From NCBI GenBank assembly GCA_033442325.1, contig JAWQFM010000032.1:637643-651620 (forward strand): DNA of 13,978 nt, written 5' to 3'. A program made the translations under genes and the position numbers. This document shows positions 503 to 11,626 of this stretch, in pieces. The first letter of the stretch is position 1. Each line of letters starts with the position of its first letter. Under the pieces are notes generated by a model. The model was not told where the DNA came from. It did no database searches and was given only the letters and a program-made list of their open reading frames with translations. This DNA comes from Salpingoeca rosetta (Eukaryota > Protista > Choanoflagellata).

Positions 503-3500
503 CAGCTCGTCCCAGAGGCAGTCGCGGTTCTCGACAAAGTGCTCGTTGCGCTGCTGGAAAACGCGGAGAACACCACCAGGGGGCAGCACGTGCGCACTGA
601 TGCAATCAGTGGATGGACGGGCATTGGAGGCGATCAAGAGAGAGAGAAATGGGGGGGGGGAGGGTGTAAGTAAATGCAGACTATGTACATTGGGGGTGTG
701 CGCCTGGGTGACGAGAATGCATCAAACACACACACACACACACACACATTCACACACACACACATTCACACACACACACACACACACACATCTTCACACC
801 TGAATTCGAGGGTTGAGATGAGGTCGTTGTCGGCGCTTGCAGTCAGCGCCCAGCCGTCAATGTCAACACTGCTCGTCTTGGACGGATTGGCGACGAGCAG
901 ACACTCCACCTTCGTGTCGACATCACGCAGCTCCAGTCTGCCGGGGCCACCACTGCTGGCATCGCTTTTGTCGCTTTCAACGGGTGCGGTGGTCGCCTGC
1001 GTCCTTGGGGCGGGCGTGCCTGCAGGCAAGGACAGCCTCGTGGGCGTTGCCTTCTTCTTCTTTGGGCGCGGCGGGCGCTGGATGGAGTTGAGCAGGCGTC
1101 GGTACTCGTCAATCTCAGCATCCAGCCACAACCTGACATCGAGAAGACGACGACGTGAGGTGTGTGTTGTGTATGCGTGTGCATGTGCGTGCGTGCGTGT
1201 GCGTGTGCATGTGTGTGTGTGTGCACGTGTGTGTGTGTGTGTGTGTTTGTGTTGCTGCGACAAATACGACGGCACACATCTCCTCCTCCCCCCCGCTTCA
1301 CTCCAGCTCCCAATCTCCCACCGTTCATCGAGAAGATCGGCGTATTTCTTCTCGTTTGCGCGTATGTGCGCAGTGAGAGCAGCAATCCGCTCCTCTGGAG
1401 AGATGCAGCAGCAACACGTGGACATTGCGAAAGCGGGGTCGTGCATGTGCGAGGTGTGAAGTGATTGAAAGACGAGAACTAAAGTCCAGCATGTACAAAC
1501 ACATTCACACACACACACACATAAGCACGCACACACACACACACACACAAGCACGCGCACACATGAACACACACACACACACACCTTTTGCTTTGATTTC
1601 TGTCGTGTGGTGATGAACGGCATCCTTCATTGACTGGCGTATGGCAGCAACCTCTTGCTTGCATGCATCCACCGTTGCATGCAGGCTCGCGTTTGTTGTG
1701 CTCAGATCCGCCTTTTCTTTCGTCAGGGTAAACACCTGCTGCTTCAGCGCCATCCTCTCCTCCGTGAACCAAGAGCTGCTCATCGCTTGCGGTCCTGCTC
1801 ACACACGTGTATGTGTGTGTATGTGTGTGTATGTGTGTGTATGTGTGTGTGTGTGTAAGTGTGTAAGTGTGTATGTGTGTGTGAGTGCTTTGGCTGCAAG
1901 CAAGCGAGCTAGCGAGTGCAACTCTGTCAAAACCTGCGATTGCATCCTGAGCAATATGCATGTGCACCAAACACATATCACCACGAGCAACACCAGCGTT
2001 ATTTCCACACCTCCCGCCCCAAATCCCCAGTCACGCACCCCTGGCATGTGTTGCGTAGTACTGGCGCAGCTTGTGGCGGTAGGCGTTGGCTGCTGCTTGA
2101 AACTCCTTCTTCACCTCCGCCACAGCAGCATCAATTGTGGTGTCGGGTGCCTGCTTGCTCGCCATCGCCTTTGTGCACGCCTGCAGCTCTTCCTCAAGCG
2201 TCGTCACCTACACACGCGCACACATGCGTGAAGATGAGAGTGTGTGTGCATGTGTGTGTGTGTGCGTGTGTGTGTGTGTGTGTGTGCGTAAATGCGTGGC
2301 GAACCACTGTCGAAAGCTTTCAACGTACACAGACACAGACACAGACACACAGACACACACAGACACACACACACACACACACACACACACACACACGACC
2401 ATGACTACGTGCTGCCATGTCCCCTGACCGTTGTCTCGTGGAGCGACTGCTGGTGATTGAGCTGGTGTTTCAGCGTCACCACTTCCGCCTCTGCCGCAAT
2501 CACACGGCGCTGTGGTGTGGTCACGCACACACACACATGCAAGTGCAAATGTAAGTGTGCAATTGTTGTCCGTGAGCAAACGCGCTCTCGCCTTCCTCAA
2601 ATAAATACGGCACACTTCCGTGACAGGTCATGCAACTACCTCGGCGGCGTGTGCGCGTGCACGTGACTCCTCCAATTCCGCGGTCATGGAAGAGATGGTC
2701 GCCTCTGTCGACGCAAGGCGGGCATCATACGCCTCCTTCTGCTTCTCCAACTCCGTGCGCAGGTCCTGCGTGCATGTGCGTTTGTGTGCATGTGAGAGAT
2801 GGTGTATGTATGCGTGTGTGTGAGCGCAAAAGAAAGCGAGGTGGGATAGTGAAAGGAGGCGACACACACACACACACACACACACACACACACACACACA
2901 CACACAAACACACACACCTGTTGGGTGGCAGCACATTCCTCCAGCTGATTGAGGGCCGTGTCCTTCACCTCGACGGCGTTCTCAAACTGTTTCTCAAGCT
3001 GCGATGCCAGTGACTGTAGCCTGTCAATCTACACAAAACCAACAAGGATGGCGACAGTGGTGGCGTGCTGTTGATGAAAAGGAGGCCATCAATGACACGC
3101 AATTGACCTTTGACCTGAACGCAAGCGAGTCAGCCCACTTCCACGCCACAACACACACACACACACACACACACACACACACACACACACACACACACAC
3201 ACACTCGTACACATTTGTACCTCTGCTTGCTGCCGTTTCACTTCCTTGCGCAGGCGCTCTTCGTTTGATTTGGATGGCGATGCCGTTGGTGTGGAAGCGA
3301 CCACCGACGTCCGTCGGGATGCCTGCGCAGCGTGCGCATATGTATGTACATGAATAAAGAATAGCACGCGGTCATGTCACGCAAGTGATATGAGCATACA
3401 AGCAACGTGCACCGCAGCCCACCAAACCGCACCTGGAGTGACACGAGCGTGGAGTGTGACGAATAGAGCGCAGATGTCCGTCGAATGTACACCTCTGCAG

Positions 3501-3758
3501 TGCGTCCCATCGGGCCGTGAACGAGGCGTCAGCCGGTTCATTCATTCATTCGCATACACACACACACACACACACACACACACACACACACACACACACA
3601 CACACACACACACACACACACACACACACACACCACTGACCAAGGTTGTCGTTGAGCTTCTCCATCTCCTCGCGCTCCTTCATCGTGTTCCGCACGGCAG
3701 CAATCGCAGCATGGCTGCTATTGTTCGCGGCATCAGCACCGCCGTCAAACGATGCCAT
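503..3758 (-). CDS. Second, divergent lamin-like intermediate filament protein ('lamin-2'), paralogue of lamin-1; at least 11 exons (493 codons to position 503), 3' end unresolved
   Basis: Minus-strand GT-AG exons: 3758-3641, 3494-3433, 3322-3221, 3028-2918, 2765-2640, 2509-2429, 2207-2039, 1794-1585, 1394-1322, 1132-800, 596-503; a candidate last exon is 396-334. Coil 1A start is KEREEMEKLNDNLEVYIRR. Rod end is KKYADLLDERLWLDAEIDEYRRLLNS, followed by the NLS PKKKK. The LTD reads GRLELRDVDTKVECLLVANPSKTSSVDIDGWAL...LEFSAHVLPPGGVLRVFQ...DCLW. Exons 3, 4 and 9 have the same lengths (102, 111, 73 nt) and phases as the matching lamin-1 exons. Confidence 0.88.
3556..3632. repeat. (CA)n microsatellite in lamin-2 intron 1; representative of many intronic CA/GT tracts (e.g. 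414-441, 727-790, 2328-2395, 2862-2917, 3151-3204, 9075-9135, 10899-10987)
   Basis: Read directly. Confidence 0.93.
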
Positions 3759-10400: not shown

Positions 10401-11626
10401 TCCTGTGGGTTGTGTGTGCGTGCATGAGTGTGTGTGTTTGGGGGGGGGAGGGGAGGGAGGGGAGGTTGACGCATACGTGGGTGAATCTTGATCCAGCGAC
10501 AAGGACCGCACATTGTTTGCACACAAGCATGAAGAAAGAAACACACACACATACACAGAGAGAGACTCACTCACACACACACACACACACACACACACAC
10601 ACACACACACACACAGCACACGTACAACAAAACACCAAAAACACAACTGACGTTGAGCTGCTTTGCGAGGTCGTCCTTCTCGCGGGTTGCCTCCAGAGCA
10701 TCGCCCTCCGTCTTGTTCAGCTGCTTGCGGAGATCCTGCACCTGGTGGTTCAGGGTGCCAATCTACAGCCGACAACATCACCACCAAACAAACAGAAAGA
10801 TAAACAGGCAAGCAGGCACGTGAGATGCCATATTGATGTCGGCTCAAGTGAATAAACAAACAGACCAGGGCCATGCTCACGTGCCACTTATGCGCATCAC
10901 ACACACACACACGCACACACACACACACACACACACACACACACACACACACACACACACACACACACACACACACACACACGCACATCTCACCTCGGTG
11001 GTTTTGCGGCGGATTTCCTCCAGGAGGTCGTTGACCTGGCCCTCCAGCTTGATGGTGGCCGTCGACTCAAAGCGCTTGCGAGAGAAGCGAATCGCCTGTT
11101 CCGGGTCGAGGACATTGCATGTGTCTCATGTTAGCGCTGTTGTCAACTGCTCGACAGCAAGCATGGGCAGCAATCCAAAAGGACGTGCACAGCTCACGTC
11201 CACTCTCGAAACAACAACCTACACGCACGCACCTCGAGCTGCGAGGTCAGCTCGCCATTCTCCTTCTGCAGCTCGCGCACACGCACGAGGTACGCAGCTG
11301 TCGAGCGAAGCCAAGCAAGCAACAAAGAAGGGAAGCAAGAGCCAATGTGTTTGTTGTGAGTTGGGCATGACTGTTGTCGAAACACGTTCACAGCGAGACG
11401 CAGTCAAACACCAGCAACATCCCTGTTCCTGTCCGACCGCAAAACACAAACAAGATCGTGCACAAACATGTCCGCACAACACGTCGACACACAACACATC
11501 GCAACAACACCACGTACACCGCGCAGCGCACGCACCGAGCTCGTTGTTGAGCTCATCGAGCTGCTCGCGCTCCTTGACGCGGCGGCGGAACTGGGGGGAG
11601 CCCGGCGTGGACGCGGTGTCGGCCAT
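7462..11626 (-). CDS. Lamin-like intermediate filament protein ('lamin-1'), 12 exons, 556 aa: head, long IF rod, lamin tail domain (LTD), no CaaX
   Basis: Manually spliced minus-strand exons, all GT-AG with consistent phases: 11626-11536, 11297-11233, 11095-10994, 10762-10652, 10402-10268, 10062-9807, 9601-9483, 9252-9165, 8974-8902, 8619-8331, 8072-7918 (in-frame alternative acceptor at 8060), 7648-7462; total 1671 nt. The N-terminus MADTASTPGSPQFRRRVKEREQLDELNNELAAYLVRVRELQKEN aligns without gaps to human lamin A [40 protein letters not shown]. The rod end YRDLLDERIALDAEIDRYRRQLE matches the IF signature ([23 protein letters not shown]). The tail GALSVEDVDYREGQYILLKNTTASPLDLADWAV...FEFPAVTLAPGRSTRVIRG...DVVW matches the LTD ([27 protein letters not shown]...YRFPPKFTLKAGQVVTIW...DLVW). 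Confidence 0.93.
7782..7913. repeat. (AAC)n microsatellite, about 44 perfect units, in lamin-1 intron 11
   Basis: Read directly. It starts 4 nt inside the donor site (GTGC GTT GTT... on the minus strand) and generates the poly-Q, poly-V and poly-L ORFs in the track. Confidence 0.95.
8281..8328. repeat. (TACA)n tetranucleotide tract at the 5' end of lamin-1 intron 10
   Basis: acatacatacat... read directly next to the donor at 8330. Confidence 0.85.
8832..8885. repeat. (CAT)n microsatellite, about 18 units, in lamin-1 intron 9
   Basis: Read directly; source of the poly-M and poly-D ORF artefacts. Confidence 0.93.

Follow-up and report, generated by a model that had tools for sequence, protein, structure and literature searches.

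The described systems closest to the gene pair treated here are lamins of animals. Animal B-type lamins (e.g. human lamin B1 and B2) have a rod with a long coil 1B, a basic nuclear localisation signal (NLS) past the rod, an immunoglobulin (Ig)-like tail and a CaaX box at the C-terminus. Drosophila LamC, the product of a separate gene (compare vertebrate lamin C), has the full lamin rod and Ig fold without a CaaX box and stands beside a CaaX-bearing paralogue. For the choanoflagellate Salpingoeca rosetta, Kollmar (2015) listed the lamins as CaaX-less (PMC4448529), and Koreny and Field (2016) noted a lamin duplication (PMC5630835). Stick and Peter (2022) described tandem genes, lamin-1 (PTSG_10006, 556 amino acids, ending ...ESSTWAIMRD) and lamin-2 (PTSG_10008, 540 amino acids, ending CSLM), with the last exon of lamin-2 on a separate contig, ACSY01003084; they reported RNA sequencing (RNA-seq) that covers all junctions and supports both genes, with lamin-1 transcribed, and inferred a duplication within S. 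rosetta (PMC10125929). Here we analysed a stretch of S. rosetta DNA of 13,978 nucleotides (contig JAWQFM010000032.1, positions 637,643 to 651,620), referred to below as the window, which very probably carries both nuclear lamin genes of this species.

The two genes are those of PMC10125929, PMC4448529 and PMC5630835, with no difference in substance, and our lengths, C-termini and layout, reached independently, agree with PMC10125929. Earlier papers already report the two genes, their tandem arrangement, the exon with the concealed CaaX box and the paralogue without one, so the pair carries little weight as discovery. What is added here is the exact position of each exon in the present assembly, support by stranded reads of 2026 runs, and a lamin-1-like protein from the choanoflagellate Barroeca monosierra. 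An earlier note on the window, made from its letters alone, had proposed a lamin duplication in a unicellular animal relative, which was correct and already published (PMC4448529, PMC5630835, PMC10125929). Its observation as a whole was partly confirmed and sound except for its claim about CaaX boxes, and its interpretation is partly supported.

The window lies on a single S. rosetta contig and matches the NCBI sequence without a mismatch. Its minus-strand open-frame pieces resemble segments of lamin rod and tail, and single fragments gave weak Pfam Filament and LTD (lamin tail domain) matches at the expected profile positions. We built both gene models by joining open-frame pieces at GT-AG sites, and every intron in both models is GT-AG. 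As the earlier note had it, there are two lamin-like genes on the same strand, 3.7 kb apart: both are on the minus strand, with the coding sequence (CDS) of lamin-1 running from 11626 to 7462 and that of lamin-2 starting at 3758, leaving a gap of 3,704 bases. In a protein search the lamin-1 model proved identical, residue for residue, to NCBI PTSG_10006. The lamin-2 model obtained from the window has 11 exons and 493 amino acids, is still open, and ends at a donor at base 503. The features of the two genes are as follows.

7462..11626, minus strand: lamin-1 gene (PTSG_10006), CDS of 12 exons, 556 amino acids, stop TGA.
11626-11536, 11297-11233, 11095-10994, 10762-10652, 10402-10268, 10062-9807, 9601-9483, 9252-9165, 8974-8902, 8619-8331, 8072-7918, 7648-7462, minus strand: lamin-1 exons, from high to low.
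11594..11608, minus strand: lamin-1 head motif TPGSP, residues 7-11, a CDK1-type S/T-P pair immediately before coil 1A.
8445..8456, minus strand: lamin-1 weak basic cluster TKRR, residues 402-405, aligning at the position of the vertebrate lamin NLS.
7462..8072, minus strand: lamin-1 tail domain (Ig fold), exons 11-12, ending ...STWAIMRD without a CaaX box.
503..3758, minus strand: lamin-2 gene (PTSG_10008), exons 1-11 of 12, residues 1-493 of 540.
3758-3641, 3494-3433, 3322-3221, 3028-2918, 2765-2640, 2509-2429, 2207-2039, 1794-1585, 1394-1322, 1132-800, 596-503, minus strand: lamin-2 exons 1-11, from high to low.
3221..3494, minus strand: lamin-2 exons 2-3, encoding a coil 1A that has diverged (EVYIRRTSALYSSHSTLVSLQ) and a linker rich in Ser, Thr and Pro.
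1051..1065, minus strand: lamin-2 candidate NLS PKKKK, residues 374-378, about ten residues past coil 2B, from a basic-cluster scan.
G000:C32:786731-786874, plus strand: lamin-2 exon 12, outside the window, 47 amino acids ending KCSLM, then stop.
334..396, minus strand: last exon of the 513-residue database model of lamin-2, TRPREWGDGQKGAGSDGEGL-stop, unused by the sampled transcripts.

The end of lamin-2 was found in RNA. Two stranded 2026 RNA-seq runs and the contigs of two older runs, together drawn from three studies, were mapped to lamin-2 plus its flanks. Stranded reads over the gene show minus-strand transcription. Reads cross four of its introns directly, including the one between exons 2 and 3 (joint 4321/4432 in L002 coordinates); the remainder hold simple repeats that the mapping skipped. 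A transcript contig of 1,773 nucleotides agrees with every exon length, all 12 exons included, and exons 1-11 as modelled in the window are confirmed, transcribed and in frame. In all four runs the transcript passes from base 503 into 230 letters that are missing from the window. The first 30 of these have a single genome location, C32:786732-786761; there, behind an AG acceptor, an exon begins at C32:786731 whose 47 codons continue the frame and close with KCSLM-stop. Since RNA joins this exon to the rest, lamin-2 is a protein of 540 amino acids with CSLM, a CaaX box, at its C-terminus; exon 12 also completes its tail domain. The earlier note had stated that neither gene shows a CaaX box. For lamin-1 this holds, as the protein ends AIMRD and no C-x-x-x-stop follows it in any minus-strand frame of 6700-7700, but for lamin-2 it does not, the CaaX box having been missed because the last exon lies outside the window.

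The NCBI scaffold, 786,423 bases long, stops short of the exon 12 locus, which follows a spacer of 100 N; the locus is therefore part of an unplaced 2.5-kb contig, which belongs, reversed, in the 1,687-N gap before the window (the gap on the other side is 4,420 N). This contig, at G000:C32:786424-789055, holds the CaaX exon and the 3′ untranslated region (UTR) of lamin-2. A 149-kb inversion had been considered as an explanation for the distant and oppositely oriented exon, and was dropped in favour of the unplaced contig on account of the scaffold length, the 100-N spacer and the N-flanked window. The assembly breaks inside the last lamin-2 intron because of (GT)n/(CA)n repeats of the kind found in other introns of the pair. 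A joint from 3542 to 5284 (L002 coordinates), present in contigs only, with GT..GC ends and unsupported by reads, was judged to be a chimera from the assembly of one run. Also rejected was the database ending of lamin-2 (513 amino acids, last exon 396-334): RNA depth is zero over window positions 1-400, and in every run base 503 is joined to the far exon instead. The public PTSG_10008 model, XP_004988925.1 (513 amino acids), owes its wrong last exon to the unplaced contig and so includes neither the CaaX box nor the final part of the tail domain, and users mining the current annotation will repeat the missing-CaaX error for lamin-2.

The reading of a rod plus LTD in both proteins stood for the rod and for the lamin-1 tail. 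Both exceed the curated cut-off of 40 for Pfam Filament (PF00038), lamin-1 with 86.9 bits over residues 18-363 and lamin-2, in its 513-residue database version, with 64.6 bits over residues 27-367. The LTD is clear in lamin-1 (33.0 bits, E 8.6e-8, slightly below the cut-off of 34.3) and weak in lamin-2. For lamin-1, phmmer against PDB returned rod and Ig-fold chains of lamin A/C, including 1ufg, 1ivt and 1ifr, and hhalign against a vertebrate lamin profile gave 99.5% probability (E 1.2e-22). The AlphaFold2 model of its tail has nine strands and a predicted local distance difference test score (pLDDT) of 91.3, and the top 16 Foldseek matches to this model are all Ig folds of lamin A/C, B1 or B2, with template modelling (TM) scores of 0.67-0.85. 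Lamin-2 aligned to vertebrate lamins with 97.4% hhalign probability (E 1.4e-11, 19% identity), and its ESM features place it nearest to ESM Atlas clusters of Filament+LTD families (0.95). Its tail scored 23.4 bits on a profile that includes lamin-1, versus 9.1 for the best of 500 shuffles, and the top 16 Foldseek matches to a partial model of that tail are likewise all lamin Ig folds, at E 1.5e-3 or worse and with lamins in the model's alignment. The long coil 1B, about 42 extra residues that distinguish lamins from vertebrate cytoplasmic intermediate filaments, is present in both proteins: the Filament matches cover 346 (lamin-1) and 341 (lamin-2) residues versus 309 profile positions, and both proteins align through the vertebrate lamin coil 1B with gaps of at most ten residues.

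Motif scans bore out what had been said of the two proteins' head motifs and basic clusters. The TPGSP of lamin-1 is in register with the vertebrate lamin TPLSP in the hhalign alignment, and S/T-P sites flank the rod at T7-P, S10-P and S372-P, the last just past the rod. The TKRR cluster matches neither the monopartite nor the bipartite NLS consensus in the basic-cluster scan, and with ERQPR at this position in the Barroeca orthologue its basic character is not conserved. The head of lamin-2 is free of S/T-P; the protein has TP and SP sites in the linker at residues 71 and 75, further S/T-P sites after the rod at 380 and 390, and the PKKKK cluster. The proposed partition of motifs between the two genes was half right, in that lamin-1 is the CaaX-less copy but lamin-2 has both an NLS and a CaaX box. 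Judged by its sequence, lamin-2 appears to be complete as a B-type-like lamin but for the CDK site of the head. It resembles animal B-type lamins in the long coil 1B rod, the basic NLS past the rod and a probable Ig-like tail, and its CaaX box also ends in M (CSLM versus CAIM/CSIM/CSVM-type ends), but differs from them in having no head S/T-P, a diverged coil 1A, a Ser/Thr/Pro-rich linker and a very divergent sequence (the 19% identity given above). Lamin-1 is alike to Drosophila LamC in its position as the CaaX-less partner with full rod and Ig fold, but differs from it and from vertebrate lamin C in its independent origin, in ending directly past the last Ig strand and in its weak NLS.

The two proteins are only 25% identical. 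Six intron positions are the same in alignment column and phase, in keeping with the earlier remark that several are shared; alignment gaps alone account for the offset of a further three, and as many as nine of the eleven positions are probably homologous between the genes. This shared exon structure shows lamin-1 and lamin-2 to be paralogues. No third lamin gene turned up in the S. rosetta genome (55.4 Mb).

The age of the duplication was approached through the Barroeca protein (EukProt P011127, 543 amino acids), which shows 45% identity to lamin-1 across its full length and has the same C-terminal layout, its sequence stopping at ...NESSTW. A maximum-likelihood tree gave (lamin-2,(lamin-1,Barroeca)) with support 86/90 and a very long lamin-2 branch (2.49 versus 0.26 substitutions per site). 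Since Barroeca is closer to lamin-1 (45%) than lamin-2 is (25%), these sequences hint that the duplication predates S. rosetta. In an approximately unbiased (AU) test, lamin-1 and lamin-2 as sisters, which would mean an S. rosetta-specific duplication, were not rejected (p 0.139), and the published view of a duplication within S. rosetta is thus called into question but not overthrown (PMC10125929). Apart from lamin-1 itself and vertebrate lamins, word-indexed searches for other choanoflagellate lamins yielded a single Barroeca protein, from an index that seems to sample every fifth word and overlooked the Barroeca protein twice; the supplement of PMC10125929 contains no choanoflagellate sequences. 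We entertain, tentatively and with some doubt, the idea that the CaaX-less, NLS-poor lamin-1 type is a conserved second class of lamin, present at least in the lineage of S. rosetta and Barroeca and derived from an older duplication. If true, it would be an independent choanoflagellate counterpart of the split between anchored and non-anchored lamins in animals, or even a cytoplasmic filament.

What might the two proteins do? By analogy with B-type lamins, we hypothesize that lamin-2, which has the full lamin layout of rod, PKKKK NLS, probable Ig-fold tail and CSLM CaaX box, would be imported into the nucleus, farnesylated and held at the inner nuclear membrane. Lamin-1, in which rod and tail are conserved best and the CDK1 motif of the head is kept, and which ends straight after the Ig fold without a CaaX box, would then probably join the lamina anchored by lamin-2. 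The biological question is whether a division of labour between one anchored lamin and one free lamin already exists in a unicellular animal relative, and since S. rosetta has genetic tools, that question is directly testable.

Several results weigh against such a lamina of two nuclear lamins. Lamin-1 appears to have no clear classical NLS, and its nuclear location is assumed; its transcription is that reported in PMC10125929. The LTD of lamin-2 scored just 19.1 bits in Pfam (E 0.0017, on the 513-residue model that lacks the domain end), and the tail scored 1.4 bits on a lamin profile made from vertebrates only. The partial model of that tail has a pLDDT of 68 and was built with lamin sequences in the alignment. 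A literature search yielded no experiments on where lamin-1 or lamin-2 is located or on their prenylation or assembly.

Animal A- and B-type lamins mostly form separate networks, which counts against an obligate two-component system in which lamin-1 and lamin-2 form heterodimers or mixed filaments, lamin-2 providing import and anchoring and lamin-1 CDK1-driven mitotic disassembly. We think such a system unlikely. Its motifs would be complementary, lamin-1 having the head TPGSP but only KRR and no CaaX box, and lamin-2 having PKKKK and CSLM but no head S/T-P, and both genes are reported as transcribed (lamin-2 RNA here; PMC10125929); against this, the rods are just 25% identical, coil 1A of lamin-2 has diverged, and lamin-2 has S/T-P sites of its own (71, 75, 380 and 390) that could serve disassembly. 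The lack of a CaaX box and of a strong NLS in lamin-1 could also point to a division by compartment, with lamin-1 a cytoplasmic intermediate filament of independent choanoflagellate origin and lamin-2 the sole nuclear lamin. The Barroeca protein, with the same C-terminal layout and still less basic at the NLS position, fits this, as does a similar division proposed by Koreny and Field for ichthyosporean paralogues (PMC5630835); a 2025 preprint describes cytoplasmic filaments as unstudied in choanoflagellates. We nevertheless consider it distinctly improbable, as the head CDK1 motif of lamin-1 is in register with vertebrate lamins, its rod and Ig fold are the most lamin-like, Stick and Peter scored it as NLS-positive, and CaaX-less nuclear lamins are common in animals (both PMC10125929). 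The heteropolymer and the nuclear/cytoplasmic model, both raised by the earlier note, are conjecture.

The divergence of lamin-2 could be taken further, to mean that this copy is in decay or has been neofunctionalised and has ceased to act as a lamin. It sits on a very long branch, it has no match among PDB sequences, and its main tail exon (exon 10) has no relative among 1.8 billion representative proteins, where phmmer found only lamin-2 itself and one coiled-coil protein. Yet the frame of 540 amino acids is intact over 12 exons, the gene is transcribed and correctly spliced, and it has kept an NLS and a CaaX box, two motifs that are meaningful only for a lamin at the nuclear membrane, all of which makes a defunct lamin-2 a very remote prospect. 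We thus favour a lamin-2 anchored at the membrane, probably joined by lamin-1.

The pair had been called tandem. The genes are near each other on the same strand, but they are not strictly adjacent, as a transcribed gene on the plus strand lies between them.

4209..6836, plus strand: PTSG_10007, intervening gene and not part of the lamin pair, 875 amino acids, single exon, 61-67% G+C.

The NCBI scaffold has the same order, with lamin-1 followed by the 875-residue gene on the opposite strand and then a Filament protein of 513 amino acids, which is PTSG_10008. Stranded reads give plus-strand RNA over PTSG_10007 at a depth above that of lamin-2. No Pfam family matched its product, which carries a long acidic stretch, rich in Asp, and a run of Gly near the C-terminus. 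Lamin-2 and PTSG_10007 are transcribed divergently, the 5′ UTR of lamin-2 reaching at least base 3785 and a plus-strand transcript contig starting at about base 3842, and a short bidirectional promoter probably serves both. A gene of 252 amino acids with no Pfam family is annotated on the plus strand at window positions 12331-13828, upstream of lamin-1 and opposite to it in orientation.

(GT)n/(CA)n tracts are numerous in the window, whose G+C content is 53-67%. Across the two lamin genes, about half of all introns have (GT)n right after the donor, up to 78 bases long (e.g. 3640-3495, 10993-10763 and 9164-8975), and several have (CA)n towards the acceptor. Two lamin-1 introns, 7917-7649 and 8901-8620, contain long trinucleotide tracts, roughly 120 bases of (GTT)n and roughly 60 of (ATG)n, which stay open in some frames and inflate lists of open reading frames.

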